From Octopus sinensis (Eukaryota), in NCBI RefSeq assembly GCF_006345805.1, contig NC_043022.1, forward strand, positions 19,220,001-19,284,000: 64,000 nt of DNA. The letters run 5' to 3'. Each line of letters opens with the position of its first letter. Position 1 is the first letter of the stretch. Made by a program: the position numbers and the translations under genes. The notes under the pieces are model-generated. The model was not told the DNA's origin and did no database searches. It saw nothing but the letters and a program-made list of their open reading frames with translations. This document shows positions 3,808-63,859 of the stretch, piece by piece.

Positions 3808-3839
<32 letters not shown>

Positions 3840-4124: not shown

Positions 4125-4210
4125 ATGTGCAATTGTTCACAATGTCTGGCTTTGAGATATCGGGCCGAGGAAATTATAGCTGTCATCACCTGCCATCATG
4201 TGACTCCAAG
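4125..4210 (+). CDS. Candidate alternative first coding exon of the SH2 adaptor
   Basis: CpG-containing unique island (~3940-4320). In-frame stop at 4086 then ATG at 4125, reading MCNCSQCLALRYRAEEIIAVITCHHVTP(R) and ending at an AAG|GTAGGT donor in phase 2. No homology support. Confidence 0.3.
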
Positions 4211-4536
4211 GTAGGTCATCTGGTCACTCATGTTTCGCACTCGACTCACCGTCTTCACTCACCCATCCTTCACTTATACTTGGTTTGTTTCTTAATCACC
4301 ACATATCCTTGCCTATAGTAGCAGTTTGACTGTTCAAGGAGATGCTACATGTTAGTTCTCTGTATGTAGGTCCAGCTACCTTAAACTCATCTACTCATCT
4401 ATCACTCCGTCCTTCTGTCTGTCATGCATCTATCTATCTATCCATCCATCAATCCAGCAATTAACACATTCATCCATACATGCATCTATCTATCCATATA
4501 TTTATCTGTCCTTCTTACTATCTTATCTATCTACCT

Positions 4537-5095
4537 ATAGGGAGAGTTTACGAAAAAAAAACAAAAGACAAAGACAGGTGGTGTACAAAACAAACAGATG
4601 TATTACTCTTTTTCTTTTTTTGTAATTGTTTCAGTCATTTGACTGTGGCCATGCTGGAGCACCGCCTCTAATCGAGCAACTCGACCCCGGGACTTATTCT
4701 TTTCTAAGCCCAGTACTTATTCTATCGGTCTCTTTTGCCGAACCGCTAAGTAACGGGGACATAAACACACGCATATATATATACATATATATACATATAT
4801 ACGACGGGCTTCTTTTCAGTTTCCGTCTACCAAATCCACTCACAAGGCTTTGGTCGGCCCGAGGCTATAGTAGAAGACACTTGCCCAAGGTGCTATGCAG
4901 TAGGACTGAACCCGGAACCATATCGTTGGTAAACAAGCTACTTACCACACAGCCACTCCTGCGCCTATTAGTATAACGCTCAGGAATAGAAAACGTATTT
5001 TACATTTCGAGCCTACACTCTTCTACATAAAGGGACGCAGAAAAAACAAGGAGAGATAAAAATGTGTGTAGTGGCTAACGATCTATCATGGTGAC
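4537..5095 (-). mobile_element. Penelope-like fragment P2 interrupted by a SINE-A (4606-4965)
   Basis: Native GATGTATTAGTATA is split, with TATTA repeated on both sides of the SINE (4601-4605 and 4966-4970). Confidence 0.65.
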
Positions 5096-5628
5096 TAGTG
5101 CCGGACAGAAGGGTCCTATCTGTTTGTCTATCTATCTATATATTCATCCATCCATTAATGCATTCATCTATACATCTACTTATCCATATACAGGTACAGG
5201 AGTGGCTGTGTGGCAAGAAGCTTGCTACCCAACCACATGGTTCCATGTTCAGACCCTCTGCATAGCACCTTGGGCAAAATATTTTCTTACTATGTGGATT
5301 TGATAGATGGAAACTGAAAAGAGCCCATTGTGTGTGTGTGTGTGTGTATGTATATATATATTATATATGTATATCTATATATTTGTTCCCCCTCCATCAC
5401 CACTTGACAACCAGCGTGGGTGTGCTTACATCCCTGTAACTTAGTGGTTCGGCAAAAGAGACGGATAGAATAATTACTAGGCTCAAAAAAATAGGTCCTG
5501 TAGTTGATTCATTCAACTAAAAATTCAAGGCAGTGCCTCAGCATGGTAGCAGTCTATTGACCGGAACCAGTAAAAGACAAAAGATATATATATATATATA
5601 TGAATAAGAATAATATGAGGTAATATTA

Positions 5629-5892
5629 TTCCAAACTTACAGGGAAAAATTCAATTTAGAAATACTAAATCAAATTTCACAAAATATAATATATATATAT
5701 ATATATAAATTAGAAAAAAAAATCCTTTTATCAATTCAATAATGAAAAATTATATTACACCAAATACGTTATATGATTTATCTTATATTTAATCTTTCTA
5801 TATGTAATTTTCTAGATGGTGTAATTCAATTTTCATTATGATTGAATTGATAAAAAGGTGTTTTTTTCTAATTTATATATATTTATAATATA

Positions 5893-5924
<32 letters not shown>

Positions 5925-6064
5925 TATATTAATTAGAGACAAAACCACTATTAGGCAAATCAAACAATGAAAGACTTAAGTCAATACATATGATTAATTT
6001 ATATTAATATTTTACTATAAAATTGGATTCAATCCTAAATGTGATTTTTCCCTGTAAGTTTGGA
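5629..6064. repeat. Nested imperfect inverted repeats in (TA)n (outer ~35 bp, inner ~60 bp)
   Basis: CCAAACTTACAGGGAAAAA at ~5631 versus TTTTTCCCTGTAAGTTTGG at ~6045; inner pair 5703-5762 versus 5817-5880. Confidence 0.8.
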
Positions 6065-6273
6065 TTTATTCCCTAATATTTATATATATATATGTATATA
6101 TAGGTGCAGGAGTAGCTGTGTGGTAAGTAGCTTGCTAACCAACCACAAGGTTCCGGGTTCAGTCCCACTGCGTGGCATCTTCGGCAAGTGTCTTCTGCTA
6201 TAGCCCCGGGCCGACCAATGCCTTGTGAGTGGATTTGGTAGACGGAAACTGAAAGAAGCCCATCGTATATATG

Positions 6274-6304
<31 letters not shown>

Positions 6305-7074
6305 TTGTGTGACTGTGTTTGTCCCCCTAGCATTGCATGACAACTGATGCTGGTGTGTTTACGTCCCCGTCACTTAGCGGTTCGGCAAAAAGAGACCGAT
6401 AGAATAAGTACTGGGCTTACAAAGAATAAGTCCCGGGGTCGATTTGCTCGACTAAAGGCGGTGCTCCAGCATGGCCACAGTGTAATGACTGAAACAAGTA
6501 AAAGAAAAGAAATTAAAGAAATATATATATATATACACACATATATATATATTATGTGTACAGTTAGATATCAGTGTATGACTACTGCTGTATAAGTTAG
6601 AGCTGCACATGGATTATCATCATCCATTTGGTTTCCAGTTTAGAAGTTAGTCAATGACCGTATGCAGCAGTGTTACTGGTTAGGATGCATACTAAACATA
6701 CTTAGTGGACATTAAAGATGGACATCAGTAGAAATATTTAATCCATGTGTATATTTGACCACTGGAGTCAGGCATCCAAATACACTTGGAACATCCAGTG
6801 TTCCAGATAACTGCAATGATAAAATGTATGTCGTAACTAAATGTTTATACTCGCTTTCTGGCTCTCTCTCTCTTTTTCTACACACACACACACACACATA
6901 TATATACATATATATACGTGTATGCATATATATATATATATATATATATGTATATTATATTGATACGAAATGGCAAGACAACAAAAAAATGAAAGAGACC
7001 TTGATATTATGTAAATGGAGGAATTATCTGTAAAAGTAATATATGAAACTATTCGGTAGCCATGATAAAACTAC

Positions 7075-7151
7075 TCAAGTTATATACATGTATATATAAC
7101 ATATATACACATATGCATATATATATATATATATTATATATATCATATATT

Positions 7152-7197
<46 letters not shown>

Positions 7198-7263
7198 TAG
7201 ATAATATATATATATATATATATATACACTATATATATATATATATATAATATATATACACAC

Positions 7264-7298
<35 letters not shown>

Positions 7299-7465
7299 AC
7301 ATATATATATATATATATATATACATATATATACATGTATATATATATACATATATATATATATATTTATATACATATATACATGTATATATATACATAT
7401 ATGTTACATGTATATACATATATATCTGTATATATACACACATACATATAAATATACATAGACAT
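7075..7465. repeat. (TA)n microsatellite
   Basis: Direct reading. Confidence 0.95.
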
Positions 7466-7899
7466 TATATTTATATTCTTTTATACTTTATTCTTCTATT
7501 TGTTTCAGTCATTGACTGCTGCCATGCTGGAGCACCGCATTTAGTCGAACAAATCAACCCCAGGACTTAGTCTTTGTAAGCCTGGTACTTGTTCTATCAG
7601 TCTCTTTCGCTAAGTTACGGGGACATAAACGCACCAACATCGGTTGTCAAGTAATGGTAGTGGGGGCAAGCACAGACACACAGACACACGGATCTGGTGT
7701 CACATAAAAATCACCAGTGCTGGTGTCACAAATAATGCATAGGGGCAGATACCATATAAAAAGCACCCAGTACACTCTGTCGAAGGATCACCCCACACTT
7801 TCGTCAAGAACAAATTCATTATTCTTAGATAAGATTAGATGATGACTTAGTTGTCTGGAACTGCGAAGTCATTCCCAATACCTTCTTTGTTTAAGAATT

Positions 7900-7930
<31 letters not shown>

Positions 7931-8589
7931 TACACACACATATATATATATTTTTTTACTTGTTTCAGTCATTTGACTGCAGCCATGCTGGAGCACCGCC
8001 TTTAATCGAGCAACTCGACCCTGGGACTTATTTTTCTAAGCCCAGTACTTATTCTATCAGTCTCTTTTGCTGACCGCTAAGTAACGGGAGATTAAACACC
8101 CGGCATCGGTTGTCAAGCAATGCTAGGGGGACAAACACAGACACACAAACACACACACACACATATATATATACATATATATGACGGGCTTCTTCAGTTC
8201 CGTCTACCAAATCCACTCAAAGCATTGGTCGGCCCGGGGCTATAGCAGAAGACATTGCCCAAGATGCACGCAGTGGGACTGAACCCGGAACCATGTGGTT
8301 GGTTAGCAAGCTACTTACCACACAGCCACTCCTGCGCCTAATATATATATATATCACACACAATACAAACAACCACTCCACGGTATATATGTATATATAT
8401 ATGTGTGTGTGTTTGTGTGAGTATGCGTGTGTGTAGATAACATTTCTTGAATAAAAATAATTGCAAACACAGCCCCGTAATTGTGTGTGTGTGAGTGTGT
8501 GTATTCATCTGTGTGTAAATGGATGTAATGTATGCTTGTGTGAGTACATTTGCATATGCACACTCACGTTTATATGTTTTTGTAGATAT

Positions 8590-8888
8590 ATAGACACACA
8601 CACACACATATACATACATACTTACATATATGCATATATACATACACACACACATAATTATGCAGCACAGTCACATTTATATATTTTATATATATGTATA
8701 TATAAACACATACATACATACATACACATACATACATACATACATACATACACACACATACACACACACAACATACATACATACATACATACTACATACA
8801 TACATACACACATACATACATACATACATACATACATACATACACCCCAACATTACATACATACATACCTTATACATACACACACACA

Positions 8889-8920
<32 letters not shown>

Positions 8921-9156
8921 CATACACACATACATACAACATACATACATACATACATACATACATACATACATACTTACATACATACACACACACACAT
9001 ACATACATACATACATACATACATACATACATCAACACACACACACATACATACACACACACATACACACATACATACATACATACATACATACATACAT
9101 ACATACACACACATACATACATACATACATACACACACACATACATACACACACAT

Positions 9157-9187
<31 letters not shown>

Positions 9188-9447
9188 TACATACATACAT
9201 ACATACATACATACTTACATACATACATATACATACACACATACATATACGTACATACATACATACATACATACATACACACACATACATACACACACAC
9301 ACACACATACATACATACACACATACATATACGTACATACACACATACATACATACACACACACATACATACATACATACATACATACATACACACACAC
9401 ACATACATACATACATACATACACACATACATATATATACGTACATC

Positions 9448-9478
<31 letters not shown>

Positions 9479-10076
9479 TACATACATACATACATACATA
9501 CATACAGCATAATACATACATACATACATACATAAATACAAATACATACATACATACAACATACATACATACATACACACATACATACATACACATACAA
9601 ATTATGCAACATCATACTTAAATCATTTTTTTCCATGCTTGTGTATATGTTTATGTATATGTGTGTATGTGTGCGTGTGTTCATATATATATATATATGT
9701 ATGTGTGTGTTCATATATGTATGTGTGTGTGTTGTAAATTTACCAAATGTCTCTGGAACTTAAATCTCTTTCTGTAAATTATTTCATTGACCCCATTTCC
9801 TTACGGTGTGTGTATGTGTGTATATATTTGTGTATATGTATGTGTGTATTTTTACATGTGTATATATATGTGTGTGTGTGTTGTCTGTCTGTCTGTCTGT
9901 ATGTGTATATGTGCCCATGCATGTGTGTATATGTGTGTTTGTATATAAATATGTGTATGTGTGTGTGTTTATGTGTTTGGCTATTTGGCTATGTATGTTT
10001 ATGCAGTCAGTGTCTATATAAGTATTGGTGTTAATTGTACAATGTATGTATGTGTGTGTGTGTGTATATGTATGTA

Positions 10077-10114
<38 letters not shown>

Positions 10115-10334
10115 GTATGTGTAGTGTGTATGTAGTATATATATATATATATGTATATATATGTATGTATGTATATATAAATGTGTGTGTATGTTTATAT
10201 ACATATATATATATACACACACACACATTACATACACATATATATATACTACATACATATATTATATAACATACATACATATATTCATACATACATATAT
10301 ATATACATACATACATATATATATACATACATAC

Positions 10335-10369
<35 letters not shown>

Positions 10370-10421
10370 TGTATATATATATGTATGTATGTATATATAT
10401 ATGTATGTATGTATATATATA

Positions 10422-10453
<32 letters not shown>

Positions 10454-10490
10454 CACACACACACATATATATACACACATATACATACAT
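8590..10490. repeat. ~1-kb (CATA)n tract followed by (TA/TG)n microsatellites
   Basis: Direct reading. Confidence 0.95.
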
Positions 10491-10554
10491 CTCTTCTTGT
10501 GATTTGTTGACACATTTCCTCTTTCCAAAGTCTGCCTCAGATAAACATCGTAGC

Positions 10555-11460
10555 ACAGCCACCACCACCACCACCACCACCACCCACCACCCCCACCACT
10601 ACCGTTACCATTATGGTTACGAAAGCTACTGCCACCCCCACCTCCAACGCCCTCATCAACCCCACCACCACCACCACCACCACCACCACCACTACTACTA
10701 CTGCTTTCTCCCTCCCCCCCATTTCTACGATCACCTCCCAACCACTACCCCCCCCCACCGGTACGAAAGCATCACCTTTCCACTTTCTCTACCTCTATGA
10801 ACACACAGCTACTAGAACCACCACAGTATCTTGTACCACCACTACTACTACTACTACTACAACCACCTACTAGAACTATTACCAATGCCACCACCACTAC
10901 AACCATGCCACTGTAACTGCAACCACAAAACCACCACAAACACTACAACCACCACCACTTCTACTACTGCTACCACCACTACAACTATAACCATTACTAC
11001 TACTGCTACTACCACTACAACTGCCTCCAGTATTACTATAATCATAACCACCACCACTACAACGGCCATCACTACCTCCATTACAACCACCACCACTACA
11101 ACAACAACCACCACCACCACTACGACCACAATCACTACCATCATTACAACTAGCACCACTACAACCACAGCAACTACCACCACTACAACCACCATCACTA
11201 CAACCTCAGTCACCACCACCACTACAACCACCACCACTACAACCACAGCCACCACCACCACTACAACCACCATCACTACCACCGCTATCACCACCACCAC
11301 TACAACCACCATCACTACCACCACAACAACCACAGCCACCACCACCACTACAACCACCATCACTACCACCACTACAACCACAGCCATCACCATCACTACC
11401 ACCACTACAACCACAGCCACCCACCACTACAACCACAGCCACCACCACCACAACTATTAC
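10555..11460. repeat. (ACC)n/(ACT)n/(ACA)n trinucleotide tract
   Basis: Direct reading; source of the poly-Thr and poly-Val ORFs. Confidence 0.95.
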
Positions 11461-11694
11461 TTCTGCAGACATTTGTTTCTTTTTGTTGGTTGGTTTTGTT
11501 TTTTTGTAACAACCCTGTTACTCTGTGTTAATGATTCTTCCTGAGAATTCTCTTAAAGTACATATGAGTGGCTGTGGAATACTCAACCACTTATAATATG
11601 CTAATTCAGTGATCAGATTATTCAGTTGATCAAGCTACTCAATACCCATCATTGAAAATGCAAGAGATCCACCCCTTGCTGTACCATGGGCTAC

Positions 11695-12309
11695 AGAAGA
11701 GGTTCAGTCCAACCAGCATCTGTTAGCGGGTGTCACAGGATGGTACAATCCATCCAGCATCATAAGTGGGTGTGACAGGATGGTACAGTCCATCCAACAT
11801 CTGTCAGCAGGTGTCACAGGATGGCATAGTCCATCCAGTGTCTGTCAGCAGGTGTCACGGGATGGCGCAGTCCATCCAGTGTCTGTAAGTGGGTGTCACA
11901 GGATGGTACAATCCATCCAGCATCCATGAGTGGGTGTTACAGGATGGCACAGTCCATCCAGCATCTGTAAGTGGGTGTAACAGGATGGCACAGCCCATCT
12001 AACATCCATTAGTGGGTGTAACAGGATGGCACAGCCCATCTAACATCCATTAGTGGGTGTGACAGGATGTTACAGTCAAACCAGCATCAGTATGTAGGTG
12101 CCACAAGATGGTTCAGTCCACCCAGCATCTATTAGTGGGTGTAACAGGATGGCACAGTCTACCCAGTATCTGTAAGTGGGTATCCCAAGTTGGTACAGTC
12201 ACCCAGCAACTGTTAGGTATCACAGGATGGTACAGTCCACCTAACTGCAAACGGTAGGTACCACAAAGAGGTGTAGTCCATGAAGGTGTAAATAGGTATC
12301 ACAGGTTGG
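11695..12309. repeat. 41-bp minisatellite, about 15 degenerate units
   Basis: Consensus GGATGGTACAGTCCATCCAGCATCTGTAAGTGGGTGTCACA. CAGGA recurs at 11736, 11776 and 11817, then CGGGA at 11858. Confidence 0.92.
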
Positions 12310-14343: not shown

Positions 14344-14926
14344 CAGTGGTTTTTGACCAGGGTTCCGCCAGTACAGTCCAGGGGTTCCGCAAGAAGTTAC
14401 AAAACTGCTAAAATCGGCAGTAATTTTCAATTCTTCTGTGCAGATTTTTTTTTTTCTTTTACTTCTTTCAGTCATTTGACTGTGGCCATGCTGGAGCACC
14501 ACCTTTTGTCGAGCAAATCGACCCTGGGACTTATTCTTTGTAAGCCCAGTACTTATTCTATCGGTCTCTTTTGCCAAACCGCTAAGTGACGGGGACGTAA
14601 ACACACCAGCATCGGTTGTCAAGCAATGCTAGGGGGACAAACACAGACACACAAACACACACACACACACACACATATATATACATATATATACATATAT
14701 ACGACAGGCTTCTTTCAGTTTCCGTCTACCAAATCCACTCACAAGGCATTGGTCGGCCCGGGGCTATAGCAGAAGACACTTGCCCAAGATGCCACGCAGT
14801 GGGACTGAACCCGGAACCATGTGGTTGGTAAGCAAGCTACTTACCACACAGCCACTCCTATGCCTATGTGTGCCAGTGGAATGTTTCCTTGGGGTTCCGC
14901 TCCAGTAAAAAGTTTGAAAAGCACTG
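14344..14926 (+). mobile_element. Non-autonomous hAT (Charlie-like) MITE carrying an internal SINE-A
   Basis: Ends CAGTGGTTTTTGAC / TTTGAAAAGCACTG. 8-bp TSD CACTACGC/CACTACAC (7/8 match). Confidence 0.8.
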
Positions 14927-29174: not shown

Positions 29175-30454
29175 TATCATTACTATTATTATTAGTATTA
29201 TTATTATTATTATATTATTATTATTATCATATTTCGTTTGTCGCTACGTTTTGAGTTCAAATTCTGCTGAGGTCAGCTTTGCTTTCCATCCTTTCGGGGT
29301 TGATGATATAAGTACCAGTTACACACTGGGGTTGATGTAATCGACTATTGCCCTCTACTCCCCCAAAATGCTCAAGGCCTTGTCCCTAAAGTAGAATAAT
29401 GATAATAATAATTATTATAATAATTATTATTATTATCATCATAGGCGCAGGAGTGGCTGTGTGGTAAGTAGCTTGCTTACCAACCACATGGTTCCGGGTT
29501 CAGTCCCACTGCATGGCACCTTGGGCAAGTGTCTTCTACTATAGCCCCGGGCCGACCAAAGCTTTGTGAGTGGATTTGGTAGACGGAAACTGAAAAGAAG
29601 CCTGTCGCATATATGTATATATATATATATATGCGTGTGTGTGTTTGTGTGTCTGTGTTTGTCCCCCTAGCATTGCTTGACAACCGATGCTGGTGTGTTT
29701 ATGTCCCCGTTACTTAGCGGTTCGGCAAAAGAGACCGATAGAATAAGTACTGGGCTTACAAAAGAATAAGTCCCGGGGTCGAGTTGCTCGATTAAAAAGG
29801 CGGTGCTCCTACATGGCCGCAGTGAAATGACTGAAACGAGTAAAAGAGTAAAAGAGTATCATTATTATATTATTATTATTATTAAAGGCGTCGAGCTAGC
29901 AGAGTCATTAGTATGCTGGATGAAATGAGTTCAAATTCTGCCATGGTCGACTTTGCCTTTCATCCTTTTGGGATGAAATAAGTACCAGTTGTGTACTGGG
30001 ATCAATGTAATCGACTAGCCCCCTCCCCTCAAATTTCTGGCCTTGTGCCTATAGTAGAAAGGATTATCATTATTTTTGTTACAAAGGACCATCTATTGGC
30101 AGAACCTCTTAGGAACATGGGGCAAAATGTGCTGTGCTGTATGGTTACCCCCACTTTTAGTCTATTGTTTCGAATCCCCCCACCAAGGGGACAGCAACTG
30201 CTTTTATTTTTCATCTTACTGAGGGGAGATCGACAACAAAAAAAAAAAATGAAAAACACAAAGTACCAGTCACGCACTGGTACAAACACAGTTGGAGTGT
30301 GGGGCATCGTAGGGTTGGGGATTGGGGGTGGTCGATTTAATCGACTGTGTCCCACCCCCACACTCCCATCCCCCACCATACCCCCCCCCCCGCTTTGTGA
30401 CACCCCCAGGAAAGCCACACATGGCCTTATGTCATTTGTGTCAGTGATGGAAAT

Positions 30455-52436: not shown

Positions 52437-52617
52437 ATTAAAACCTTCCATCAAAATTCCATGTAAAGTTTTGTCCCAAACACCATCTTAATAATGGCAA
52501 AGCTATTTTACGAAATTCTTCCTTATTTTCGAAACTAATTGAAACAAAGACAAAGTATTTCAACAGAAATATGGTAAGAAACGGGTTGAACGAGACAAGT
52601 TCAGAAACACCAAATAC

Positions 52618-52717
52618 CTTTTGTTATTCGAGAGAATCCTGCCACCGAGGAATTGTGAGTGCTGCTGTCTTCGTTTCTATTGAATTTAAACTCTGTGTAA
52701 TTGCTGATCATACTTAT
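52618..52717 (-). CDS. Repeat-module extracellular protein, B-type exon (phase 0-1)
   Basis: ctatcatttcAG acceptor and AAG|GTATTT donor; 100 bp. Reads ISMISNYTEFKFNRNEDSSTHNSSVAGFSRITK. Same size and phase class as the other B exons. Confidence 0.75.
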
Positions 52718-55700
52718 CTGAAATGATAGATTTGAAATATTGTTAAGATAACTCAGCTCTTTTACTCTTTTACTCTTTTACTTGTTTCAGTCATTTGACT
52801 GCGGCCATGCTGGAGCACTGCCTTTAGTCGAGCAAATCGACCCCGGGACTTATTCTTTGTAAGCCCAGTACTTATTCTATCGGTCTCTTTTGCCGAACCG
52901 CTAAGTGACGGGGACGTAAACACACCAGCATTGGTTGTCAAGCAATGCTAGAGGGACAAACACAGACACACAAACATATATATATATATACATATATACG
53001 ACAGGCTTCTTTCAGTTTCCGTCTACCAAATCCACTCACAAGGCTTTGGTCGGCCCGAGGCTATAGCAGAAGACACTTGCCCAAGATGCCACGCATTGGG
53101 ACTGAACCCAGAACCATGTGGCTGGTTAGCAAGCTACTTACCACACAGCCACTCCTGCACCTATTTGAGATCTGATTATGAGTTGCCTCAGTTCCTTGTC
53201 AAGGGGTTGGTGTCGTTTGTCCGAGCATTTTCTGTTTGTGTCAGTGTCCTATGGTGGAAGTAGGGCGGGTAGGAGAAACACTAAATCCTTTCTTTGCTCA
53301 AACCTCATTTCAAGTCAATCAATCAATTGATCGTGGAGGCACATGGCCTGGTGGTTAGAGCAGCGAACTCGCGGTCGAGGGATAGTGGGTTCGAATCTCA
53401 GACCGAGTGATGTGTGTGTTTATGAGCGAAATATCTAAGCTCCACGCGGCTCTGGCAGAAGGTAATGGCGAACTTCTGCTGACTCTTTCGCCACAACTTT
53501 CTCTCACTCGTTCCTCCTGCATCTTGCAGCTCACTTGTGACGGACCGGTGTTCCGTCCAGGTGGGGAACCTATATGCCAAGGAAACCGGAAAACCGGCCC
53601 TTATGAGCCAGGCGGGGCTCGAGAAGGAACAAACAATCAATTGATCTATCAATCAACCAAGTTTAAGCACAAGTTTAATAAAGAGTTTCTACTGCTTGCC
53701 TTTGTGGAGGCGCAATGGCCCAGTGGTTAGGGCAGCGGACTCGCGGTTTCGATTCCCAGACCGGGTGTTGTGAGTGTTTATTGAGCGAAAACACCTAAAA
53801 GCTCCACGAGGCTCCGGCAGGGATGGTGGTGATCCCTGCTGTACTTCACCACAACTTTCTCTCACTCTTACTTCCTGTTTCTGTTGTACCTGTATTTCAA
53901 GGGGCCGGCCTTGTCATTCTCTGTGTCACGCTGAATATCCCCGAGAACTACATTAAGGGTGCACGTGTCTGTGGAGTGCTCAGCCACTTACACGTTAATT
54001 TCACGAGGAGGCTGTTCCGTTGATCGGATCAACCGGAACCCTTGTCGTCGTAACCGACGGAGTGCCTCCACTACTTGCCTTTTCTTCAAGCCAGGTATAT
54101 CCTCTCAGCAGGTCATTAACATTTTTGGTCTTAATTAATTAAGAGAGTCACTTAGCATTCTCCACTGACGATGCGAATATGGAGCTAGTACTGCAGAGGA
54201 ATAGAATGGTCAGCAGTCATACACTACACCCACTTGTAACTGTAAGATGTACCATTGCCATGAGTATCATCATCATCTTCAACATGATCACTACTACCAC
54301 TGTCTCCACCATCATTACCATAATCCTCCTTAACATCCAATTTCCACGATGGAATGGGCTTGACAGTTTGACAGGACCTGAAAAGATGGCTGGGTGGTAC
54401 ATCATGCACCACTGTCTACTTTGGCATGGTTTCTTATTTCTTTACTGCCCACAAGGGGCTAAGCATAGAGGGGACAAACATGGACAGACAAAGGGATTAA
54501 GTCGATTACATTGACCCCAGTGCGTAACTGGTACTTAATGTATCGACCTCAACAGGATGAAAGGCAAAGTCGACCTTGGTGGAATTTGAAATACCTATTT
54601 CTTTATTACCCACAAGGGGCTAAAAACATAGGGGACAAACAAGGCAGACAAAGGGATTAAGTCGATTACATTGACCCCAGTGCATAACTGGTACTTAATT
54701 TATCGACCTCAAAAGGATGAAAGGCAAAGTCGACCTTGGTGGAATTTGAAATACCTATTTCTTTATTACCCACAAGGGGCTAAAAACAGAGGGGACAAAC
54801 ATGGACAGACAAACGGATTAAGTCGATTACATCGACCCCAGTGCGTAACTGGTACTTAATTTATCGACCCCGAAAGGATGACAGGCAAAGTTGACCTCGG
54901 CGGAATTTGAACTCAGAACGTAACGGCAGACGAAATACGGCTATGCATTTCGCCCAGCGTGCTAACGTTTCTGCCAACTCGCCGCCTTAATAGTTTGATA
55001 GCCATAGAAACCATGCTAAACCATACTTTGGCATGGTTTCTATGGTTGCATGACTTTCCTAATGTCAACCACTTTACAGAGTGTACTGAGTGACTTTTTC
55101 GTTCATGGCACCAGCACTAACAAGGATCACCTTATAACTCCAAGGTTAAGGTCCAAAAGAAGCCCTTATAACTGAGGGAGGATAGAAGAGGGAGTGGGTG
55201 GTGATTTTAGGCAGGAGGATGAGTGATTGTATTTTAGAGGGGAAACAAGTGAAATAAATAGGGGACAGGGGATAGGTAAGGGATTAGCTACAGGGTTTAG
55301 AAAAAGAGGAGACAGAGTTGAAAGGCGAGAGGGTGGGTTGTGTAGTGAGCATGGTGGTGGCGAGGGAGGGTAAAGTCGAGGGCTATCCCTCATTATAAGT
55401 ATGTTCCAGAAGAGAACATGGAGTAAAGTTGGCCCCACTGAAAGTGTGAACCAGTCATTTTGAAGTATGAAATTCTCTTCCATGAAACATGCAGCCTGAC
55501 TCCCTATCATCTCTACATGTTTTCACTTTAACATTCAGGTTTCTCGGTCAAATGTAATGCTTATTTACTCTTTACTCTCTTTTACTTGTTTCAGTCATTT
55601 GACTGCAGCCATGCTGGAGCACCGCCTTTAGTCAAGCAAATCAACCCCAGGACTTATTCTTTGTAAGCCCAGTACTTATTCTATCGGTCTCTTTTGCCGA

Positions 55701-56180
55701 ACCGCTAAGTAACGGGGACACAAACACACCAGCATCGGTTGTCAAGCAATGCTAGGGGGACAAACACAGACACACAAACACACACACACATATATACACA
55801 TATACGACGGGCTTCTTTCAGTTTCCGTCTACCAAATCCACACACAAGGCTTTGGTCAGCCCGAGGCTATAGTAGAAGACACTTGCCCAAGGTGCCACGC
55901 AGTGGGACTGAACCTGGAACCATGTGGTTGGTAAACAAGCTACTTACCACACAGCCACTCCTGCGCGTATTGATTCACATTGTTTTGAAATAAACATAGA
56001 TTATGTCATAGCTTCAAGATTTCGATGGCGTGATGGTTAATTGCTAGTATGAGATTGTAGGTTATGTGTGAGAGGTCAGATATGGATGTTTTGAGCATAA
56101 AACGGAAAATATTGGGGCTGGATATGATATGGCTGTTTTAAATGCTAAAGGGCAAAAGTAGGTTAAGAAAATATATTTAC

Positions 56181-56407
56181 TTCATTGATTTTCAGAGATT
56201 CATTCTTAAAATGGAGATTTATGCTTGTGATTTCCAAGTTTTCATACGTCTTCAGATTAAAATACTTAATATAGCTATCTCCATATGTGCAGAAATTCCT
56301 CCATTTCAAATGTCTGGTGAAAGAAGATAACGTGCCTTGGATTATTTCTACGGAGAAAGTTCGTTCATGTTCTTCAGGAGAAATAACTTTCAACAGCCAG
56401 TTCTTGC
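56181..56407 (-). CDS. Repeat-module extracellular protein, A-type exon (phase 1-0)
   Basis: aaatttttatttcAG acceptor and GAA|GTAAAT donor; 227 bp. Reads KNWLLKVISPEEHERTFSVEIIQGTLSSFTRHLKWRNFCTYGDSYIKYFNLKTYENLEITSINLHFKNESLKINE. Aligns with exon 59326 (WRIELTS/WLLKVIS; [26 protein letters not shown]). Confidence 0.85.
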
Positions 56408-57430
56408 CTGAAATAAAAATTTAGAAAATAGGACTTTTAGTCTGTGTGTGTATACATACACACAAGCATATATGCATTCACACACACACACATGTATATA
56501 CAGGGTATCCCAAATTTCATAACTTTACTATAACATACAGTATGGGGTAGACGAAGACTTATAGATAAATAAATAAGTAAATAATAATAAGGGAGGAAGC
56601 GCTCTGTCGGTTACGACGATGAGGGTTCCGGTTGATCCAAATCAACGGAACAGCCTGCTCGTGAAATTAACGTGTAAGTGGCTGAGCACTCCACAGACAC
56701 ATGCACACTTAACGTAGTTCTCGGGGATATTCAGCATGACACAGAAAGTGACAAGGCCGGCCCCTTGAAATACAGGTACAACAGAAACAGGAAGTAAGAG
56801 CGAGAGAAAGTTGTGGTGAAAGAGTACAGCAGGGATCACCACCATCCCCTGCCGGAGCCTCGTGGAGCTTTTAGGTGTTTTCGCTCAATAAACACTCATA
56901 ACGCCCGGTCTGGGAATCGAAACCGCAATCCTATGACCGCGAGTCCGCTGCCCTAACGACTGGGCCATTGCACCTCCACAAATAATGATAATGATAGTAT
57001 ACTACGGGTACTATAAGTGAGACAGAATTTTTTCAATTTTTCCAAAGCAAAATATTTTTATATTTCAAACAATTATGACATGACCATATTTATTCGATAT
57101 GCCATTCCTAATGCCAACCACTTTACAGGGTGTACTGAGTGACTTTTTCGTTAAAGTGCTACTGGAAGCTTGAAAATGCAAAGAAGAGAGTTTAGGAGGG
57201 AGTTTCAGACAGATCCACCTACGTGACTTAATATCATCCAAATTAGAGATGAGTTTGAACATGGAACTCTTCAGAATGTCTACAAAAAATATGGCTCCTC
57301 CGTGGATATGGAAGAGCCCTACAAAGCAAGAATGTATACACAAGACATATTGTCAGGGTTCAAGAAAATTGGTGCCAGGAGTTATTAGACAAAAATTTGA
57401 TATTGAAAGTCCAACTTGATTTTGAAATGC

Positions 57431-57709
57431 TCTTTCAATTACTTTAAATATTACAAAGAAATTAGTAAAATAATTTGGTTATCATTCAGCTAGTGTTAGG
57501 AACATAAATTGTGACTAAGGTTTGATGGTAGTTTTTATTCAAAACTTATGAAAACAAGACATTTGTATTACAGAACCAGAGCCGTTTTCATAAGTTTTGA
57601 ATAAAAAACTTCCATCAAATCTTAGTCACAATTTATGTTCCTAACACTAGCTGAATGATAACCAAATTATTTTACTAATTTCTTTGTAATATTTAAAGTA
57701 ATTGAAAGA
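57431..57709. repeat. ~125-bp inverted repeat (about 3 differences) with a 28-nt spacer
   Basis: 57431-57555 versus 57584-57709. Confidence 0.95.
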
Positions 57710-58153
57710 AACACAGAGCATCTCAAAATAAATACAGTAATGAAAGGGTTAAAGGATAAAAATTAGACCAAAGAATAGCCTATACTCTCAAAGAAGATGA
57801 TCCAAAGCAAAGACTAGAGGTTTCTAATGGAATTTGGAAGCATGTATAGGAGATGCACACTTCCTAATAAAAATTCCTTAAAGTGATGAGGCTAAATTTA
57901 AATTAAACGTCTCAACGAACCACAACAGTTGCCTCTAATGAAAACCTGAGAATTCAAATATTAGAGAGAAACATCATGTTAATATATAGGCGCAGGAGTG
58001 GCTGTGTGGTAAGTAGCTTTCTTACCAGCCACATGGTTCCGGGTTCAGTCCCACTGCATGGCATCTTGGGCAAGTGTCTTCTGCTATAGCCTCGGGCCGA
58101 CCAATGACTTGTGAGTGGATTTGGTAGACGGAAACTGAAAGAAGCCTGTCGTA

Positions 58154-58186
<33 letters not shown>

Positions 58187-58735
58187 GCGTATATGTGTTT
58201 GTGTGTCTGTGTTTGTTCCCCCACCATCGCTTGACAACCGATGCTGGTGTGTTTACGTCCCCGTCACTTAGCGGTTTGGCAAAAAGAGACCGATAGAATA
58301 AGTACTGGGCTTACAAAGAATAAGTGCCGGGGTCGATTTGCTCGACTAAAGGTGGTGCTCCAGCATGGCTCCAGTCAAATGACTGAAACACGTAAAAGAG
58401 TAAAGAGTAAAGAGTAGGTGTTATAGTGTGGTGCAGCCTCTCACCAAAAGAATTAATTAAACCATTCTTTACAGTACTATAACTGATCTCATTAACTTAC
58501 TGTGACAATCTGGCACATCAAACATTCAAAGGATTTTAAGAACTCCATATTAATTAAACACAAATTTATCAAGTATGTGAATTCTACATATCTCTTTCTT
58601 TAAATTTCCTTAATTTCAATTTAAACTATTATTAATCCTGCTTTGAATTCTCACAAAATGATTATCTCCCTTTTGATAGTTGTGACCACCGGAGGGACCC
58701 CATATGCTTGATGTGGTTGCTCAATGAAATCTTAC

Positions 58736-58829
58736 TTTTTAGAACTTCACAAGAATATTTCCTTGCATTTTTCCTATTTATGTTAACACAACCATATTCT
58801 TCTCCAGTAAGCACCTTTGTCATGACAAT
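58736..58829 (-). CDS. Repeat-module extracellular protein, B-type exon (phase 0-1)
   Basis: taattttttcAG acceptor and A|GTAAGA donor; 94 bp. Reads IVMTKVLTGEEYGCVNINRKNARKYSCEVLK(S). Phase-compatible with both neighbours. Confidence 0.85.
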
Positions 58830-58889
58830 CTGAAAAAATTAATTAAAAAATGGTTTTAAGTTAAGTTGATTATATCTATCTATCTATCT

Positions 58890-58938
<49 letters not shown>

Positions 58939-58944
58939 CATTAT

Positions 58945-58975
<31 letters not shown>

Positions 58976-59078
58976 TATATATATAATGTGCATTTTTACT
59001 CTAACAATAACAAAGACAAAGTAAGGAACAAAAAGAAAGAAAAGCAAACACAGAATTCAAGAAGGTGAAAATACTTAC

Positions 59079-59326
59079 CTTGGATATATTGAAAGGTTTT
59101 TTATTGCTTCTGAAGTCTATTTCCACCTCGCTGATGCTTACATTCGGAATATTGGTAACAGCAGATATTGTGGGGAGGTGAGCTAACTTTTGGAATGCTA
59201 GACGAGTTTGGTTCCTTGTCTGTGAAGAGTTTGATTTACTGTCACCCATCCCAACAAATATCTTCATTTGTTTTGCACGTTCTATCCGTTTGGATCGAGA
59301 AGTTAGTTCTATTCTCCATGTGGAAT
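59079..59326 (-). CDS. Repeat-module extracellular protein, A-type exon (phase 1-0)
   Basis: ttttttctttcttctttAG acceptor and AAG|GTAAGT donor; 248 bp open. Reads [82 protein letters not shown]. Confidence 0.85.
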
Positions 59327-59456
59327 CTAAAGAAGAAAGAAAAAAAATAGTCAAAGGGAAAAAAAAACAATAACAAACATGGTGTAGTGGTCATCCAAAC
59401 ACACACATATATACATACATATTCATATATATATACATATATATATCCATACATTC

Positions 59457-59527
<71 letters not shown>

Positions 59528-59717
59528 ATATATCTATCTATATATATATACACACACACACATATATGTATATATATATATATATATGCCAGCGCCGCCT
59601 TAACTGGCTTCCGTGCCGGTGGCACATTAAAAGCACCAACTGATCGCGGCTGATTCCAGACTCCCTTGGAACCTGTGCCGGTGGCACGTAAAAAGCACCC
59701 ACTTAAATTTTCACTGC

Positions 59718-60770
59718 TTAACTTAAAATGGACTTTTCACTGCTTTCAATCTGTTTGTTTAGGCGATTTGAAATTTTTGTACGCCGTCTCATTAAAATTT
59801 TCCTCTCTCTGGGGATTTTGTTCTTGTGTACAGTGGCCTTTCTCTCTGGGACACATTTGTAGCATATGGCTTGCATTACAGACATGAATTGTTGAAGTTT
59901 CACGTCGATGTCTGGCGAGGAGAGACATTTAGGCCAGTTTTGTTTGAGGATCTCTTTCTCAATTTGTTTCCAGTTTGCCTTATGGTAGTTCAAGCTGGAA
60001 AGATTCTGAGGGTTTCTTGTAGGCTGCATGTCCGTGCTCTCTTTTGGCCCGTACATGGTCAGCTCTACCATGTTGTGATCCGAGAGTAGTGTCGGTGTTA
60101 CTTTCACATTATGGATGAGATCCATGTCATTTGTGAAGCAGAGATCCAGTGTGTTACTTGCCCTGGTTGGTTGGAGTATTACTTGCTCCATGTACAGGGT
60201 GTTGATGAGGTTCAGGAGGGACCTCGCCTGTCCTCGTTCACATCTTGTCATTCCTGGAAGAGAAAGGCCCTCAGGCCATCTGACATTGGGTAGATTGAAG
60301 TCTCCCATGAGAAGTACACTTATGTGTTGTTCTAATGTGATTAGAACTTCTTCTATTTTTATAAGGCAGTCTTCAAACTTGCCTACATGGCTTGGGGCAT
60401 CTGGAGAGCGATATGTAGCACACACAACTACATCGAGTTGCCTTATGTGTACAATTAGTGTGTCACACACCGAGTTTGAGTATGACAAAAGGACCTGGGG
60501 TGTGAGGTCCTCACGGATGTACATAGCAACTCCTCCATGACTCCTTTCTTTTCTGTCGGTCCGTAGTACAACATACTGTGGTATGTGTAATTCCGCATCT
60601 GCTATGTCCGGTTTCAGGTGCGTTTCCGTAAGTGCTATGCATAAGGCTTGATTGCATGCGACAAAGTCTCTCAGGAACGGGATTTTTGTCCTGTTACTGA
60701 GTGTTTGCATTCCTCTGATGTTCAGTAGGAGCATCGAGGTGAGGTGTATGTTGTTGCCGGCGGTGTCCAT
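59718..60770 (-). CDS. CR1-like LINE ORF2, APE endonuclease domain and linker; truncated before the reverse transcriptase
   Basis: Motifs [66 protein letters not shown], followed by the CR1-type linker LNYHKANW and [13 protein letters not shown]. The frame is open from 60893; probable ATG at 60770. Confidence 0.92.
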
Positions 60771-61630
60771 CTTGGGTCTGTTTGCTGTGGTGGTCTTGTA
60801 TATTGTGGGTAGTCCCACCTGTGAGCTTGGGTTTGATGAAGCCAGGTCAGCTGCTGTACAATCTTTTGTGCCATGCACAAAAAAGATTCTTGCTCAGCAG
60901 CTGCCCTTTCAACAACGTCATGTTGGCGGTTTGTAGCACGCAACACATCTGCATACCTCCGTTTTGGGGCAGGTGGTGCGTGGTCCATCCCTTTTCCTTG
61001 TGTTGATGGTTTGTTTATCTGTTTTCGTTTCGTGTCTCTGCGGCAGGGTCCCCGATGTGCAAAGCGGCAGCCTGCACCTTCCTCTCCATGCCAGCAGGTA
61101 CCTCTCAGGTAGAACCTACACACCCGTGTGCGCTGTTTGTTTCCAACCCTTGTGGTTCCACTTCTATTCCTGGCTGTTTCACCCTTTGGTCCTGCTTGAG
61201 CTTTTCCTTTAGCTCTTTCAGTCCTTCTTTTAGTTCTTCCTCCCTCTACTTCTTCCCTGGGTTCTCCATCTCCATGGCCCTTGCTGCCGGTAGGAGCATT
61301 TGTACTTGGATTCAATTCCCGGGCAGGTTTCTCACTCAAAACCCCTTCCCGGGTGTCCACCAGGTGGGGGTGACTTCTTTCATCATCTCCATCCTTGCCA
61401 TCTTTGCCCTGCTCGTTCTCAAAAATGGCATCAAGTGTGCCAATGTTCGACCGTACAAGCGCATAGGAGCGTTTGAATTCCTGTTTCTTTCGCTCTATCT
61501 GAGCTACCGTCCTTTTGTAGTTGCCACTCTTCAGCGCAGCCGTAATCACATTGTTTGGGTTTTCTCCGTCGGTGCATTTCCAGGCTCGTACGAACAACGC
61601 CAGTTCGTCAGGTCTCCAGGCTCTGGACAT
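60722..61630 (-). CDS. CR1-like LINE ORF1 (302 aa): N-terminal Myb/SANT-like trihelix motif and CCCH zinc finger
   Basis: Intact ATG-to-TGA ORF directly upstream of, and overlapping, an APE-endonuclease ORF. Contains CRFYLRGTCWHGEEGAGCRFAH (C-x7-C-x8-C-x3-H) and WRPDELALFVRAW...ITAALKSGNYKRTVAQIERKKQEFKRSY. Confidence 0.85.
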   Translation of the reverse strand: MSRAWRPDELALFVRAWKCTDGENPNNVITAALKSGNYKRTVAQIERKKQEFKRSYALVRSNIGTLDAIFENEQGKDGKDGDDERSHPHLVDTREGVLSEKPARELNPSTNAPTGSKGHGDGEPREEVEGGRTKRRTERAKGKAQAGPKGETARNRSGTTRVGNKQRTRVCRFYLRGTCWHGEEGAGCRFAHRGPCRRDTKRKQINKPSTQGKGMDHAPPAPKRRYADVLRATNRQHDVVERAAAEQESFLCMAQKIVQQLTWLHQTQAHRWDYPQYTRPPQQTDPRWTPPATTYTSPRCSY

Positions 61631-61719
61631 GTTGGATAATCTATCTATTTATTTATCTATCTAATTATGTTCAAAATTCAATAGTGTGACAGCGGGCAGA
61701 GAAAGAAAGCGACTGTGCA

Positions 61720-62130
61720 CCTAGAGAGATTGAGAGCTGAGAGAAGATAAGAAGATATATATTTATGCGACTATATATTTAGAGAAATTGAGAAGGTGAG
61801 AGAGGAAAGATTGAGAGCTGAGAGAAGATAAGAAGATATATATTTATGCGACTATATATTTAGAGAGATTAAGAAGGTGAGAGAGGAAAGATTGTGACAG
61901 AGAGAAGTGGAGAAGTGAAGAGACAAGGGAAGATTGAATGGCTGAAAGAAGAGAGATGAGAAGGTGAGAGAGGAAAGATTGTGACAGAGAGAAGTGGAGA
62001 AGTGAAGAGACAAGGGAAGATTGAATGGCTGAAAGAAGAGAGATGAGAAGGTGAGAGAGGAAAGATTGTGACAGAGAGAAGTGGAGAAGTGAAGAGACAA
62101 GGGAAGATTGAATGGCTGAAAGAAGAGAGA
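61720..62130 (-). repeat. Tandem monomers in the LINE 5'UTR (81 bp x2, 87 bp x3)
   Basis: ATTGTGACAG at 61891, 61978 and 62065 (period 87); ATTGAGAGCTG at 61729 and 61810 (period 81). The two units share GAAGGTGAGAGAGGAAAGATTG. Confidence 0.9.
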
Positions 62131-62707
62131 TGGTGTGATAGAGAGAAGTAAAGAGACAGAGGGAGAAAGAGAGGGGGTTACGAAAGCTGCAATAGAAATG
62201 AGGGATTAAGAAAATGAAAGATTGTTAAAGAGAGGATTGTTAAAAACGAGAAACAGATATTGAGAGAATGTAAACAAAAACGGCCTTCGTAACTTTTAAC
62301 GGAGTTGCAAGCTTAAGTTAAGGGAAATAAAATAAGATAATAGATAAAATATGAAATAGAAGATGAAAGTGATACTTATTCCAACGATGTAGTCTGGGTT
62401 TTTGTGCTTTACGGAATTATTTTCCAGGAGAGATGTTTCTTTTTCCTTCTTACAGGAGATAAATTAATTCAATGAGTGTCCACCAAGTGCGTTTTCGGCG
62501 AAAAGAAAATAACTCTATTTGGCTTCAGGCAAAATATATTACGTTTTTGATTAATATATTTTTAACCAATGTGTTGTAAATGGACTTTATGATTTGAATT
62601 TTTCGTTTTGTGACTTTCAGTAGGCTATTTCGCCGATTTATGCAAACTTTTCTGTTTTTTTTAACAGAGCAAAGGCGAGACACGTCTTTCTCTGGGAAAA
62701 CCGGAAG

Positions 62708-62740
<33 letters not shown>

Positions 62741-62747
62741 ATATATA

Positions 62748-62793
<46 letters not shown>

Positions 62794-62869
62794 TTATACA
62801 TATGTATCTATGTATGTATATGTATATAACTCTTACTTGTTTCACTCATTTGAGTGCAGCCTTGCTGGA

Positions 62870-63042
62870 TCACTGCCTTTTAGTTGAAAAGTTTTGGGCC
62901 CAATCCACTTCATGGACCCTAAGTAATGAATGTGTAAAATTTGAATGAAATCGGTTGAGTAGTTCTTGAGTTTTACTGATGCACTCACACACACACACAC
63001 ACACAGATGTGCATGCGTGATCTCAGTTTTATATATATAGAT
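62870..63042 (+). mobile_element. Non-autonomous Helitron/Helentron (DINE-like) 3' end
   Basis: AAATTTGAATGAAATCGGTTGAGTAGTT..(CA)n..TTTTATATATATAGAT architecture. Confidence 0.45.
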
Positions 63043-63547
63043 TATTCACCAACGACTGTGAGTTTTGAACTGAAACATTCCAGGTTCAAATGCGAGGAAG
63101 GTTTCCTGCATGGCAGTTTGGGTAAGTGTCTGAGCAAGGCTTTGTGAGTGGATTTGATAGACTGCAACTGCAAGAAGCCCATCATAGGCATACACATATA
63201 CATGTATGCCTACATGTATGTGTATATATATATATATATTTTTTTTTTTACTTGTTTCAGTCATTTGACTGCGACCATTCTGGAGCACCACCTTTAGCCG
63301 AGCAACTCGACCCCGGGACTTATTCTTTGTAAGCCCAGTACTTATTCTATCGGTCTCTTTTTGCCGAACCGCTAAGTTACAGGGACGTAAACACACCAGC
63401 ATCGGTTGTCAAGCAATGCTAGGGAAACAAACACAGACACACAAACATACATATAGCAGAAGACACTTGCCCAAGATGCCACGCAGTGGGACTGAACCCG
63501 GAACCATGTGGTTGTTAAGCAAGCTACTTACCACACAGCTGCTCCTG

Positions 63548-63597
<50 letters not shown>

Positions 63598-63598
63598 A

Positions 63599-63631
<33 letters not shown>

Positions 63632-63759
63632 TGTGTGTGTGTGTATGTCCATGTCTATAAGAGCGAGTGTATGTGAGAGTAAATGCAACCTGACTCAATG
63701 AATTTCTTCTGATCCATGCTATAGAGAAATGAGATAAGAAATATCTTTTATCAACTTAC

Positions 63760-63859
63760 CATTTGTCAAGAAACATCTATGGTAATCAAGTACATTAAAC
63801 AGATAAGGAATGAAAATACAGGAATATATTTTGTAATTTGCCATATTCTGCAGTTTTAC
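63760..63859 (-). CDS. Repeat-module extracellular protein, B-type exon (phase 0-1)
   Basis: ttttctctttttctcttacttttAG acceptor and G|GTAAGT donor; 100 bp. The only open frame reads VKLQNMANYKIYSCIFIPYLFNVLDYHRCFLTN(D). Size, phase and Cys pair match exon 58829-58736. Confidence 0.65.

Follow-up and report, generated by a model that had tools for sequence, protein, structure and literature searches.

The LOC118768046 locus

The stretch of DNA analysed here, referred to as the window, comprises 64,000 nucleotides (nt) of the Octopus sinensis genome (NCBI RefSeq assembly GCF_006345805.1, contig NC_043022.1, positions 19,220,001 to 19,284,000), and carries on its minus strand the 3' part of LOC118768046, a gene built from a repeated two-exon module. 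Five exons of this gene are found in the window sequence (Table 1), with lengths of 100, 248, 94, 227 and, when the last one is taken only as far as a donor site (52717-52618), 100 nt. Each of them is preceded by a pyrimidine-rich tract and AG, and followed by GT. Their 769-nt splice product contains 256 open codons in frame 0 and is filled with stops in the other two frames, and because the G+C content of the window is 39%, an open frame of this length is not expected by chance. The product is identical (100% identity over 100% of its length) to residues 183-438 of the RefSeq 'uncharacterized protein LOC118768046' of O. sinensis, which counts 443 amino acids (aa). The five exons, and with them the gene, are confirmed. 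A first-pass annotation, made from the sequence alone, had proposed these exons, with their GT-AG sites, phases and lengths, as well as a single open frame of about 256 aa, and all of this agrees with the RefSeq exon map. It had also described the gene as hidden, whereas the identity with LOC118768046 means that RefSeq annotates it already.

The locus fetched for LOC118768046 (L001) overlaps the window exactly, which on this basis corresponds to CM016884.1:19,220,001-19,284,000, and the gene extends past the right-hand end of the window. Exact spliced mapping of the 443-aa protein onto this locus gives nine coding exons, namely, a signal exon followed by four modules of two exons each, which provides the extension of the gene model that the first-pass annotation had called for. 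Of these exons, the last five lie in the window (positions 52601-63859, minus strand), corresponding to the B exon of module 2 and the complete modules 3 and 4, and their four junctions match the exon map base for base, with phases that alternate 0-1 and 1-0. No additional copies of the module and no paralogues were found in the other 52 kb of the window by tblastn with the 256-aa product and all family members, and scans of the window for tRNAs and Rfam families returned nothing.

Table 1. Exons of LOC118768046 and other features of the window (lengths in nt; positions are those of the window)
Feature	Position	Strand	Length	Phases	Remarks
Signal exon			55	0 to 1	
Module 1			194 + 91	1 to 0, 0 to 1	
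Module 2			206 + 100	1 to 0, 0 to 1	
Module 3			248 + 94	1 to 0, 0 to 1	
Module 4			227 + 117	1 to 0, 0 to 0 as annotated	Stop included; 100 nt to the donor
Module 2 B exon	63760-63859	minus		0 to 1	aa 183-215, VKLQNM...CFLTN; Cys196 and Cys211
Module 3 A exon	59079-59326	minus		1 to 0	aa 216-298, ends FNISK; covers strands one to five of the domain as predicted (AlphaFold module model)
Module 3 B exon	58736-58829	minus		0 to 1	aa 299-329, IVMTKVLTGEEYGC...CEVLK; invariant Cys312 and Cys325; encodes the last strands of the domain
Module 4 A exon	56181-56407	minus		1 to 0	aa 330-405, KNWLLKVIS...LKINE
Module 4 B exon and end of the coding sequence as annotated	52601-52717	minus			aa 406-443 plus TGA
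3' flank with junction relative to L004	52477-52594	minus			DNA similarity to L004 and L002
Codon of C369	about 56289-56291				Module 4
Codon of C442	about 52604-52606				Tail GIWCF
Non-LTR retrotransposon fragment	59718-61630	minus			Inside intron 63759-59327
SINE-like repeat, examples	6107-6512; 14457-14859; 29448-29856; 52765-53157; 55568-55963; 57993-58407				
Intron tandem repeat	54435-54911				
Intron tandem repeat	61727-62132				
Microsatellite-rich region	1-12000				

A repeated two-exon module

The four modules measure about 92-115 aa each and have the same two-exon layout, with an A exon running from phase 1 to phase 0 and a B exon running from phase 0 to phase 1. They come after a signal exon ending in phase 1, each of them being flanked on both sides by phase-1 introns, as the first-pass annotation had recognised, and interrupted by a phase-0 intron. 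This exon map is that of a symmetric 1-1 exon set, which characterises mobile modules of the exon-shuffling type. An O. vulgaris paralogue displays an identical structure of nine exons with the same phases.

The module profiles were compared using hhalign, with shallow, then with deeper alignments. They align in a colinear and nearly end-to-end manner, with E-values of 0.03-0.06 for the pairs M1-M2, M1-M3 and M2-M3. These comparisons reproduce the alignments of A exons with A exons and B exons with B exons noted at first pass (WRIELTS with WLLKVIS, and ISEVEIDF...ISKIVMT with ITSINLHF...INEISMI), although the latter do not reach significance on their own. As the modules are not significantly similar in sequence, the claim of a repeat therefore rests on the exon structure and the predicted fold. 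In this respect, all four modules have the internal intron near the C-terminal end of the domain, at most three residues away from where a predicted strand starts, the B exons starting at residues 84, 183, 299 and 406, and the strands at residues 81, 181, 296 and 405. The gene would have arisen through serial duplication of a symmetric (1-1) pair of exons downstream of its phase-1 signal exon, and would represent a clean case of domain amplification via such a phase-1 exon pair.

Extracellular features of the protein

The N-terminus of LOC118768046, MLLLSYWSILVIIFPYLLLTQA, is a typical signal peptide as judged by eye. The whole protein harbours 13 N-X-S/T sequons, compared with 6.6 +/- 2.2 in shuffled sequences (P = 0.008), and the part encoded in the window has the eight sequons counted in the first-pass annotation, compared with 4.3 +/- 1.8 in shuffles (P = 0.04). 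Cys pairs, separated by 5-15 residues, are present in the B exons of modules 1, 2 and 3, including the two pairs that had been noticed in the window (C196/C211 and C312/C325). All 17 non-identical relatives compared have kept the module-3 pair, and the leading Trp shows no variation in module 4, and almost none in module 3, among the aligned relatives. The Cys pair of modules 1-3 probably forms a disulfide bond in the C-terminal strands of the domain. Furthermore, in many paralogues the same four modules precede a short stalk, which leads to a hydrophobic helix of 20 residues and a cytoplasmic tail, and this helix downstream of the modules places the latter outside the cell. The signal peptide, the sequon excess, the conserved short-range Cys pairs and the transmembrane helix of the paralogues all speak for the extracellular protein initially proposed, which would enter the secretory pathway, be heavily N-glycosylated, and be released as a soluble four-domain rod.

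Beyond four putative intradomain Cys pairs, two cysteines are left, C369 in module 4, which is either Cys or Ser among relatives, and C442 in the GIWCF tail. It can be speculated that the tail cysteine allows covalent dimerisation.

Predicted fold of the module

The full-length protein was modelled with AlphaFold2 from an alignment of seven sequences, with moderate confidence (predicted local distance difference test, pLDDT, 69; predicted template-modelling score, pTM, 0.61). This all-beta model shows eight strands per module in modules 2-4, and its only high-probability matches in a Foldseek search of the PDB are PLAT/LH2 domains. Glycosidases, phage tail proteins and components of pore-forming toxins, retrieved with probabilities below 0.15 and high root-mean-square deviation (rmsd), were rejected as artefacts of aligning a four-domain rod.

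Module 3, which lies wholly inside the window, was modelled alone from 17 sequences, giving a pLDDT of 82 and a pTM of 0.77, and its 115 residues form eight to nine strand segments. The best 30 Foldseek matches of this model in the PDB are all PLAT/LH2 domains, with E-values from 1.6e-3 to 0.1, probabilities of 0.87-1.0, query-normalised template-modelling (TM) scores of 0.44-0.55, rmsd of about 5-6 A and sequence identity of 6-17%. They include lipoxygenases (LOX) from grape and soybean, coral 8R- and 11R-LOX, and human 5-LOX and 15-LOX-2, together with pancreatic lipase and related proteins, lipoprotein lipase and RAB6IP1. In the same search, the C2 domains of Ci-VSP, PI3K-gamma and RasGAP appear below rank 30 with probabilities of at most 0.33 and TM scores of at most 0.40, and the immunoglobulin (Ig) domain of KIR (1nkr) reaches a probability of 0.23 and a TM score of 0.30.

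PLAT domains consist of a sandwich of two four-stranded sheets, are encountered in membrane- or lipid-associated proteins, and resemble C2 domains (PMC4232524). The octopus module agrees, at the level of structure prediction, with a sandwich of this type, made of two four-stranded sheets and about 110-120 residues. When sequence profiles are considered, the module is not a member of the PLAT family PF01477. No Pfam family was retrieved for the ectodomain at E <= 10, the sole matches being noise in transmembrane segments (TMEM154, EphA2_TM), and no match was found among PDB sequences, in line with the initial statement that the sequence could not be placed in a known family. The resemblance to PLAT/LH2 sandwiches suggested at that stage is therefore upheld for the fold, through the best 30 Foldseek matches, but not for the sequence. 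The accompanying objection that PLAT repeats are usually cytosolic carries little weight, PLAT domains not being confined to the cytosol, as exemplified by the secreted pancreatic and lipoprotein lipases.

Two other classes of beta-sandwich were considered and rejected. C2 domains are outranked by PLAT domains in the Foldseek search, and no Pfam C2 match was obtained. With regard to Ig-like or fibronectin type III repeats, there is likewise no Pfam match, the KIR domain has the low probability mentioned above, and the Cys pairs of the octopus modules are 5-15 residues apart, whereas those of Ig domains are separated by about 55-70 residues.

The gene could nevertheless be real and its module unrelated to PLAT, being either an independent, lineage-specific sandwich or a diverged C2- or Ig-like one, and Foldseek would then land on PLAT domains only because small eight-stranded sandwiches are alike. 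The lack of a sequence or profile link to PLAT, the level of the TM scores, rmsd and identity, the acknowledged resemblance between PLAT and C2 domains (PMC4232524), and the prediction of the model from a 17-sequence alignment are all compatible with this possibility. However, the best 30 PDB matches span four unrelated classes (lipoxygenases, pancreatic lipases, lipoprotein lipase and RAB6IP1), and the 23 best of them have probabilities of 0.93-1.0, far above the values of the C2 and KIR domains. In addition, the full-length model gave the same PLAT set independently, and both the domain length and the strand count fit PLAT. We consider an unrelated sandwich rather unlikely, and a PLAT-like fold of the module quite probable in view of the models; each module would then fold as an eight-stranded beta-sandwich of the PLAT/LH2 type.

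The 3' end of the gene

In the first-pass annotation, the last exon ended at the donor site at 52618, whereas the annotated exon reads through the GT at 52617 into five codons (GIWCF) followed by TGA, and ends at 52601. The donor (G/GT at 52618/52617) is thus located inside the last exon, between ITK and GIWCF, and the same donor sequence is spliced in the paralogues bearing a transmembrane helix. In particular, the window sequence AAG/GTATTT is nearly equal to the AAG/GTATAT used in L004, an O. sinensis paralogue locus in which the last module exon is followed after 1.3 kb by a stalk exon and, after another 1.2 kb, by a transmembrane exon. Homology between the window and L004 covers the last module exon up to 52594, and then resumes from 52584 with the L004 intron situated beyond the stalk exon, so that about 1.75 kb of L004 (10861-12608), stalk exon included, is absent at window positions 52584-52594. 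No homologue of the transmembrane exon was detected by DNA similarity to L004 after this junction, and a tblastn search of the 52.6 kb downstream in the window with the stalk, transmembrane and tail parts of nine paralogues gave only microsatellite or low-complexity matches. The downstream sequence and the GIWC-stop end are the same in P0002, an O. vulgaris paralogue (locus L002), and for this reason the loss of the stalk looks old and common to a subfamily devoid of transmembrane helix. In P0010, the closest relative from O. bimaculoides, the protein goes on with a stalk, a transmembrane helix and a tail.

These observations bear on whether the gene also encodes a membrane-anchored receptor, by use of the donor at 52618 and of stalk, transmembrane and tail exons located further downstream or too diverged to be recognised; the read-through end would in that case correspond to a minor isoform or to an annotation default. 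The near identity with the donor used in L004 would fit such a receptor, as would the existence of isoforms with and without the helix in other family genes (LOC115217968) and the nature of the transmembrane exons, which are short and low in complexity and, for this reason, hard to find by tblastn. Against it, no candidate exon was obtained with the nine tails in the 52.6 kb downstream in the window, the stalk and transmembrane exons of L004 lie within 2.7 kb of the last module exon, an interval that is rearranged here, and the annotation of the O. vulgaris paralogue likewise ends in GIWC and a stop. An anchored product of this gene thus appears improbable, and on balance the gene most likely encodes a secreted form without transmembrane helix.

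The family and its distribution

An exhaustive hidden Markov model search with the family profile against 1.84 billion representative proteins retrieved 25 relatives, 24 of them at E <= 1e-10, and nothing beyond. The source was looked up for 15 of the 25, and all 15 come from O. sinensis, O. vulgaris, O. bimaculoides or Argonauta hians. The named relatives are all 'uncharacterized' or 'hypothetical', and no paper on the family was found in the full-text literature, which was searched by identifier (gene, protein, UniProt) and for tandem or extracellular PLAT domains in cephalopods. As far as the library searched and the sources looked up show, the family is therefore undescribed and restricted to octopods, in keeping with the lineage-specific repeat envisaged at first pass. 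Several family genes share one chromosome-scale contig, and isoforms differing in the presence of the transmembrane helix exist for some of the genes, such as LOC115217968 (X1 versus X2-X4).

The tails of seven transmembrane paralogues encoded outside the window (P0003, P0004, P0013, P0015, P0018, P0027 and P0035) share acidic tyrosine motifs, namely, N-P/S-x-x-I/V-Y-x-N (NPEDIYAN, NSEEIYAN) and a C-terminal YEDL, YEEL or YEEF. When read by eye, these motifs resemble phosphotyrosine-docking or YxxPhi sorting signals. Receptors with immunoreceptor tyrosine-based inhibitory or activation motifs (ITIM or ITAM) combine a transmembrane helix with a cytoplasmic (I/V/L/S)xYxx(L/V/I) motif or paired YxxL/I motifs. 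An assignment to this type was rejected, the gene in the window having neither transmembrane helix nor tail, and the motifs of the paralogues having neither the canonical ITIM residues nor the ITAM spacing.

Selection on the coding sequence

The coding sequence was compared with that of the O. vulgaris protein P0002. With a synonymous divergence (dS) of about 0.33 and flanking introns that are 71-91% identical in local alignments, P0002 was rejected as an orthologue, and in view of its dS it is regarded as an old paralogue. The ratio of nonsynonymous to synonymous divergence (dN/dS) takes the values 0.54, 1.01, 1.02 and 0.61 in modules 1 to 4, respectively. Exon 6 is 71% identical, compared with 83-91% for the flanking introns, and several exons are apparently less conserved than their surroundings, but this comparison is affected by local-alignment bias and is suggestive only. 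Identity between L001 and L002 is 43-52% in modules 2 and 3, 77% in module 4 and 87% in the last exon, an unevenness that could be due either to diversifying selection acting on the middle modules or to gene conversion affecting the 3' end. The 307 coding differences from P0002 include no stop and only in-frame insertions or deletions, whereas neutral evolution would have produced about 14 stops (P about 7e-7).

These data also bear on a reading of the locus as a decaying, truncated duplicate of a membrane-receptor gene, that is, an emerging pseudogene which has lost its stalk, transmembrane and tail exons by deletion and is now drifting, and whose annotated protein would be a computational model without biological role. 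Several features would be expected of such a duplicate: the stalk and transmembrane exons present in L004 are absent here, and P0010, the closest O. bimaculoides relative, has them; dN/dS is 0.82 overall and about 1.0 in modules 2 and 3; no transcript-derived copy of the protein is on record; and the introns carry a fragment of a long interspersed nuclear element (LINE) and copies of a repeat resembling short interspersed nuclear elements (SINEs). On the other hand, all nine exons are open and have canonical AG and GT sites, the truncated 3' end and its stop are common to a paralogue at a dS of about 0.33, and the 307 substitutions have introduced no stop where about 14 are expected. Moreover, the Cys pairs and the leading Trp have been kept, and sequons are enriched. 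A decaying duplicate is accordingly very doubtful, and the locus is better viewed as a functional gene with fast-evolving middle modules, in which relaxed constraint is possible.

Repeats and other features of the window

The intron 63759-59327 contains, on the strand of the gene, a fragment of a retrotransposon without long terminal repeats (LTRs). It includes a 302-aa open reading frame (ORF) with a CCCH zinc finger (Torus/zf-CCCH) and an overlapping 386-aa ORF with an AP-endonuclease domain (Exo_endo_phos_2, E 1e-11), and no reverse-transcriptase part was seen in it. Another repeat, SINE-like and composite, is about 400 bp long and has a (TA)n tract inside it; it gives 36 blastn matches that occupy about 16% of the window, and many of the copies are about 90% identical to the L001 copy used as query. 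Several copies are present in the introns of the gene, one of them ending 48 nt before the acceptor of the last exon, and the database 'protein' P0008 (Logan contig) begins inside such a copy. ARAGORN detected no tRNA-like head on this repeat. Tandem repeats occur in introns at two positions (Table 1); they comprise a 160-bp unit in three copies (92% matches), and overlapping arrays with periods of 81, 87 and 42 bp. The first 12,000 positions of the window are very rich in microsatellites, have a strongly negative GC skew (down to -0.58) and showed no sign of a gene; the long ORFs that arise in them (HTHTHT, CVCVCV, VVVV and TTTT types) are spurious.

Known systems and proposed role

PLAT/LH2 domains (PF01477, PS50095) are found in lipases, lipoxygenases, polycystin-1 and RAB6IP1, and share with the octopus module a length of about 110-120 aa and an eight-stranded sandwich, predicted in the case of the octopus; as in the lipases, the domain is part of a secreted protein. 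However, the octopus modules have no detectable sequence or profile similarity to PLAT, they possess a conserved Cys pair in the C-terminal strands and many sequons, and the ectodomain consists of four tandem copies without catalytic or channel partner domain. LOXHD1, compared here by description only, is also built almost wholly of tandem PLAT or PLAT-like repeats. It comprises 15 canonical repeats recognised by Pfam, has neither signal peptide nor transmembrane helix and is conserved across vertebrates, whereas the octopus family has four divergent repeats and a signal peptide, and is octopod-restricted. The plant PLAT-plant-stress proteins, such as Arabidopsis PLAT1, resemble the octopus protein in combining a PLAT-type sandwich with a predicted signal peptide and entry into the secretory pathway (PMC4232524). 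They differ from it by their single canonical PLAT domain and their localisation in the endoplasmic reticulum, and no homology to the octopus family was detected.

In overall design, the family recalls the vertebrate Ig receptors of the KIR/LILR type, which form multigene families of type I proteins with tandem sandwiches, tyrosine motifs in the tail and soluble isoforms. The octopus family as such associates a signal peptide, tandem sandwiches each flanked by phase-1 introns, one transmembrane helix and a tail with tyrosine motifs, and also has variants without the helix, several genes on one chromosome-scale contig and fast-evolving ectodomain modules. In contrast to these receptors, the octopus domain is not Ig-like (probability of 0.23 for 1nkr), the tails are not canonical ITIM or ITAM tails, and the gene in the window is tail-less. 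This likeness, drawn by comparison of architectures, is an analogy of design and not a homology.

Taken as a whole, the observations are likely to be best explained by an annotated gene for a soluble, glycosylated protein with four PLAT-like modules, belonging to an octopod family, and the core interpretation of the first-pass annotation is thereby supported. The following points weigh against this explanation. Between-module sequence similarity is not significant by hhalign (E 0.03-0.5), and is weakest for the pairs involving module 4 (E 0.19-0.47), which has no Cys pair. With hmmscan against Pfam-A at E <= 10, no PLAT match was obtained for the window product, seven full-length members or 17 module-3 copies, and the profiles of modules 3 and 4 gave only chance matches (E about 0.5) against all PDB sequences. 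The structural argument comes from a predicted model, module 3 being the only one modelled alone, and TM scores near 0.5 with rmsd of 5-6 A are borderline for an identical fold. The C-terminus may correspond to the read-through or to splicing to an unrecognised exon. The overall dN/dS of 0.82, with values of about 1.0 in modules 2 and 3, fits relaxed constraint as well as diversifying selection. Lastly, the protein has no transcript-derived copy on record, the sole contig that carries it being chromosome CM016884.1 of the genome assembly GCA_006345805.1.

With regard to function, the members of the family would most likely be cell-surface receptors for recognition or signalling, a role proposed because the tails of the transmembrane members bear acidic tyrosine motifs (E-E-I-Y-A-N, Y-E-D-L). 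These members would signal, or be endocytosed, via such motifs (EEIYAN, YEDL, YEEL). LOC118768046 would represent their soluble counterpart, either decoy-like or ligand-binding, since this gene, and the paralogue with the same 3' end, are devoid of stalk, transmembrane and tail exons. By analogy with known PLAT domains, the partner may be a lipid, a membrane surface or a protein, and this is the weakest part of the proposal.

What is new here is the fold assignment, qualified as above, the four-module phase-1 architecture, and an octopod-restricted family of type I and secreted glycoproteins with a tandem PLAT-like ectodomain. Limited literature searches returned no description of the PLAT fold as the sole tandem ectodomain of a type I or secreted glycoprotein, and we know of no description of this fold as a sole, tandemly repeated ectodomain. 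The predicted design of the family is that of a signal peptide followed by four PLAT-like sandwiches, extended in many members by a transmembrane helix and a tyrosine-rich tail. Lineage-restricted 'uncharacterized' genes are numerous in cephalopod genomes, and very few of them have a fold assignment; one such orphan family thereby gains a domain architecture, a predicted fold and a topology.

A more far-reaching and distinctly speculative view, which we hold to be improbable, is that the family forms an octopod-specific system of cell-surface and soluble recognition, employing a PLAT-like sandwich that binds lipids or surfaces as a variable ectodomain. The membrane-distal and middle modules would then be under diversifying selection, the tyrosine tails would signal, and the members without transmembrane helix would act as secreted opsonin-like or decoy factors, the whole constituting a lineage-restricted analogue of Ig-type immune or self/non-self receptor families. 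Should the family not be such a system, it would still be another orphan family, now provided with a testable structural hypothesis; if it does turn out to be one, and to evolve fast, it would have implications for the way in which molluscs, having no antibodies, build receptor diversity.

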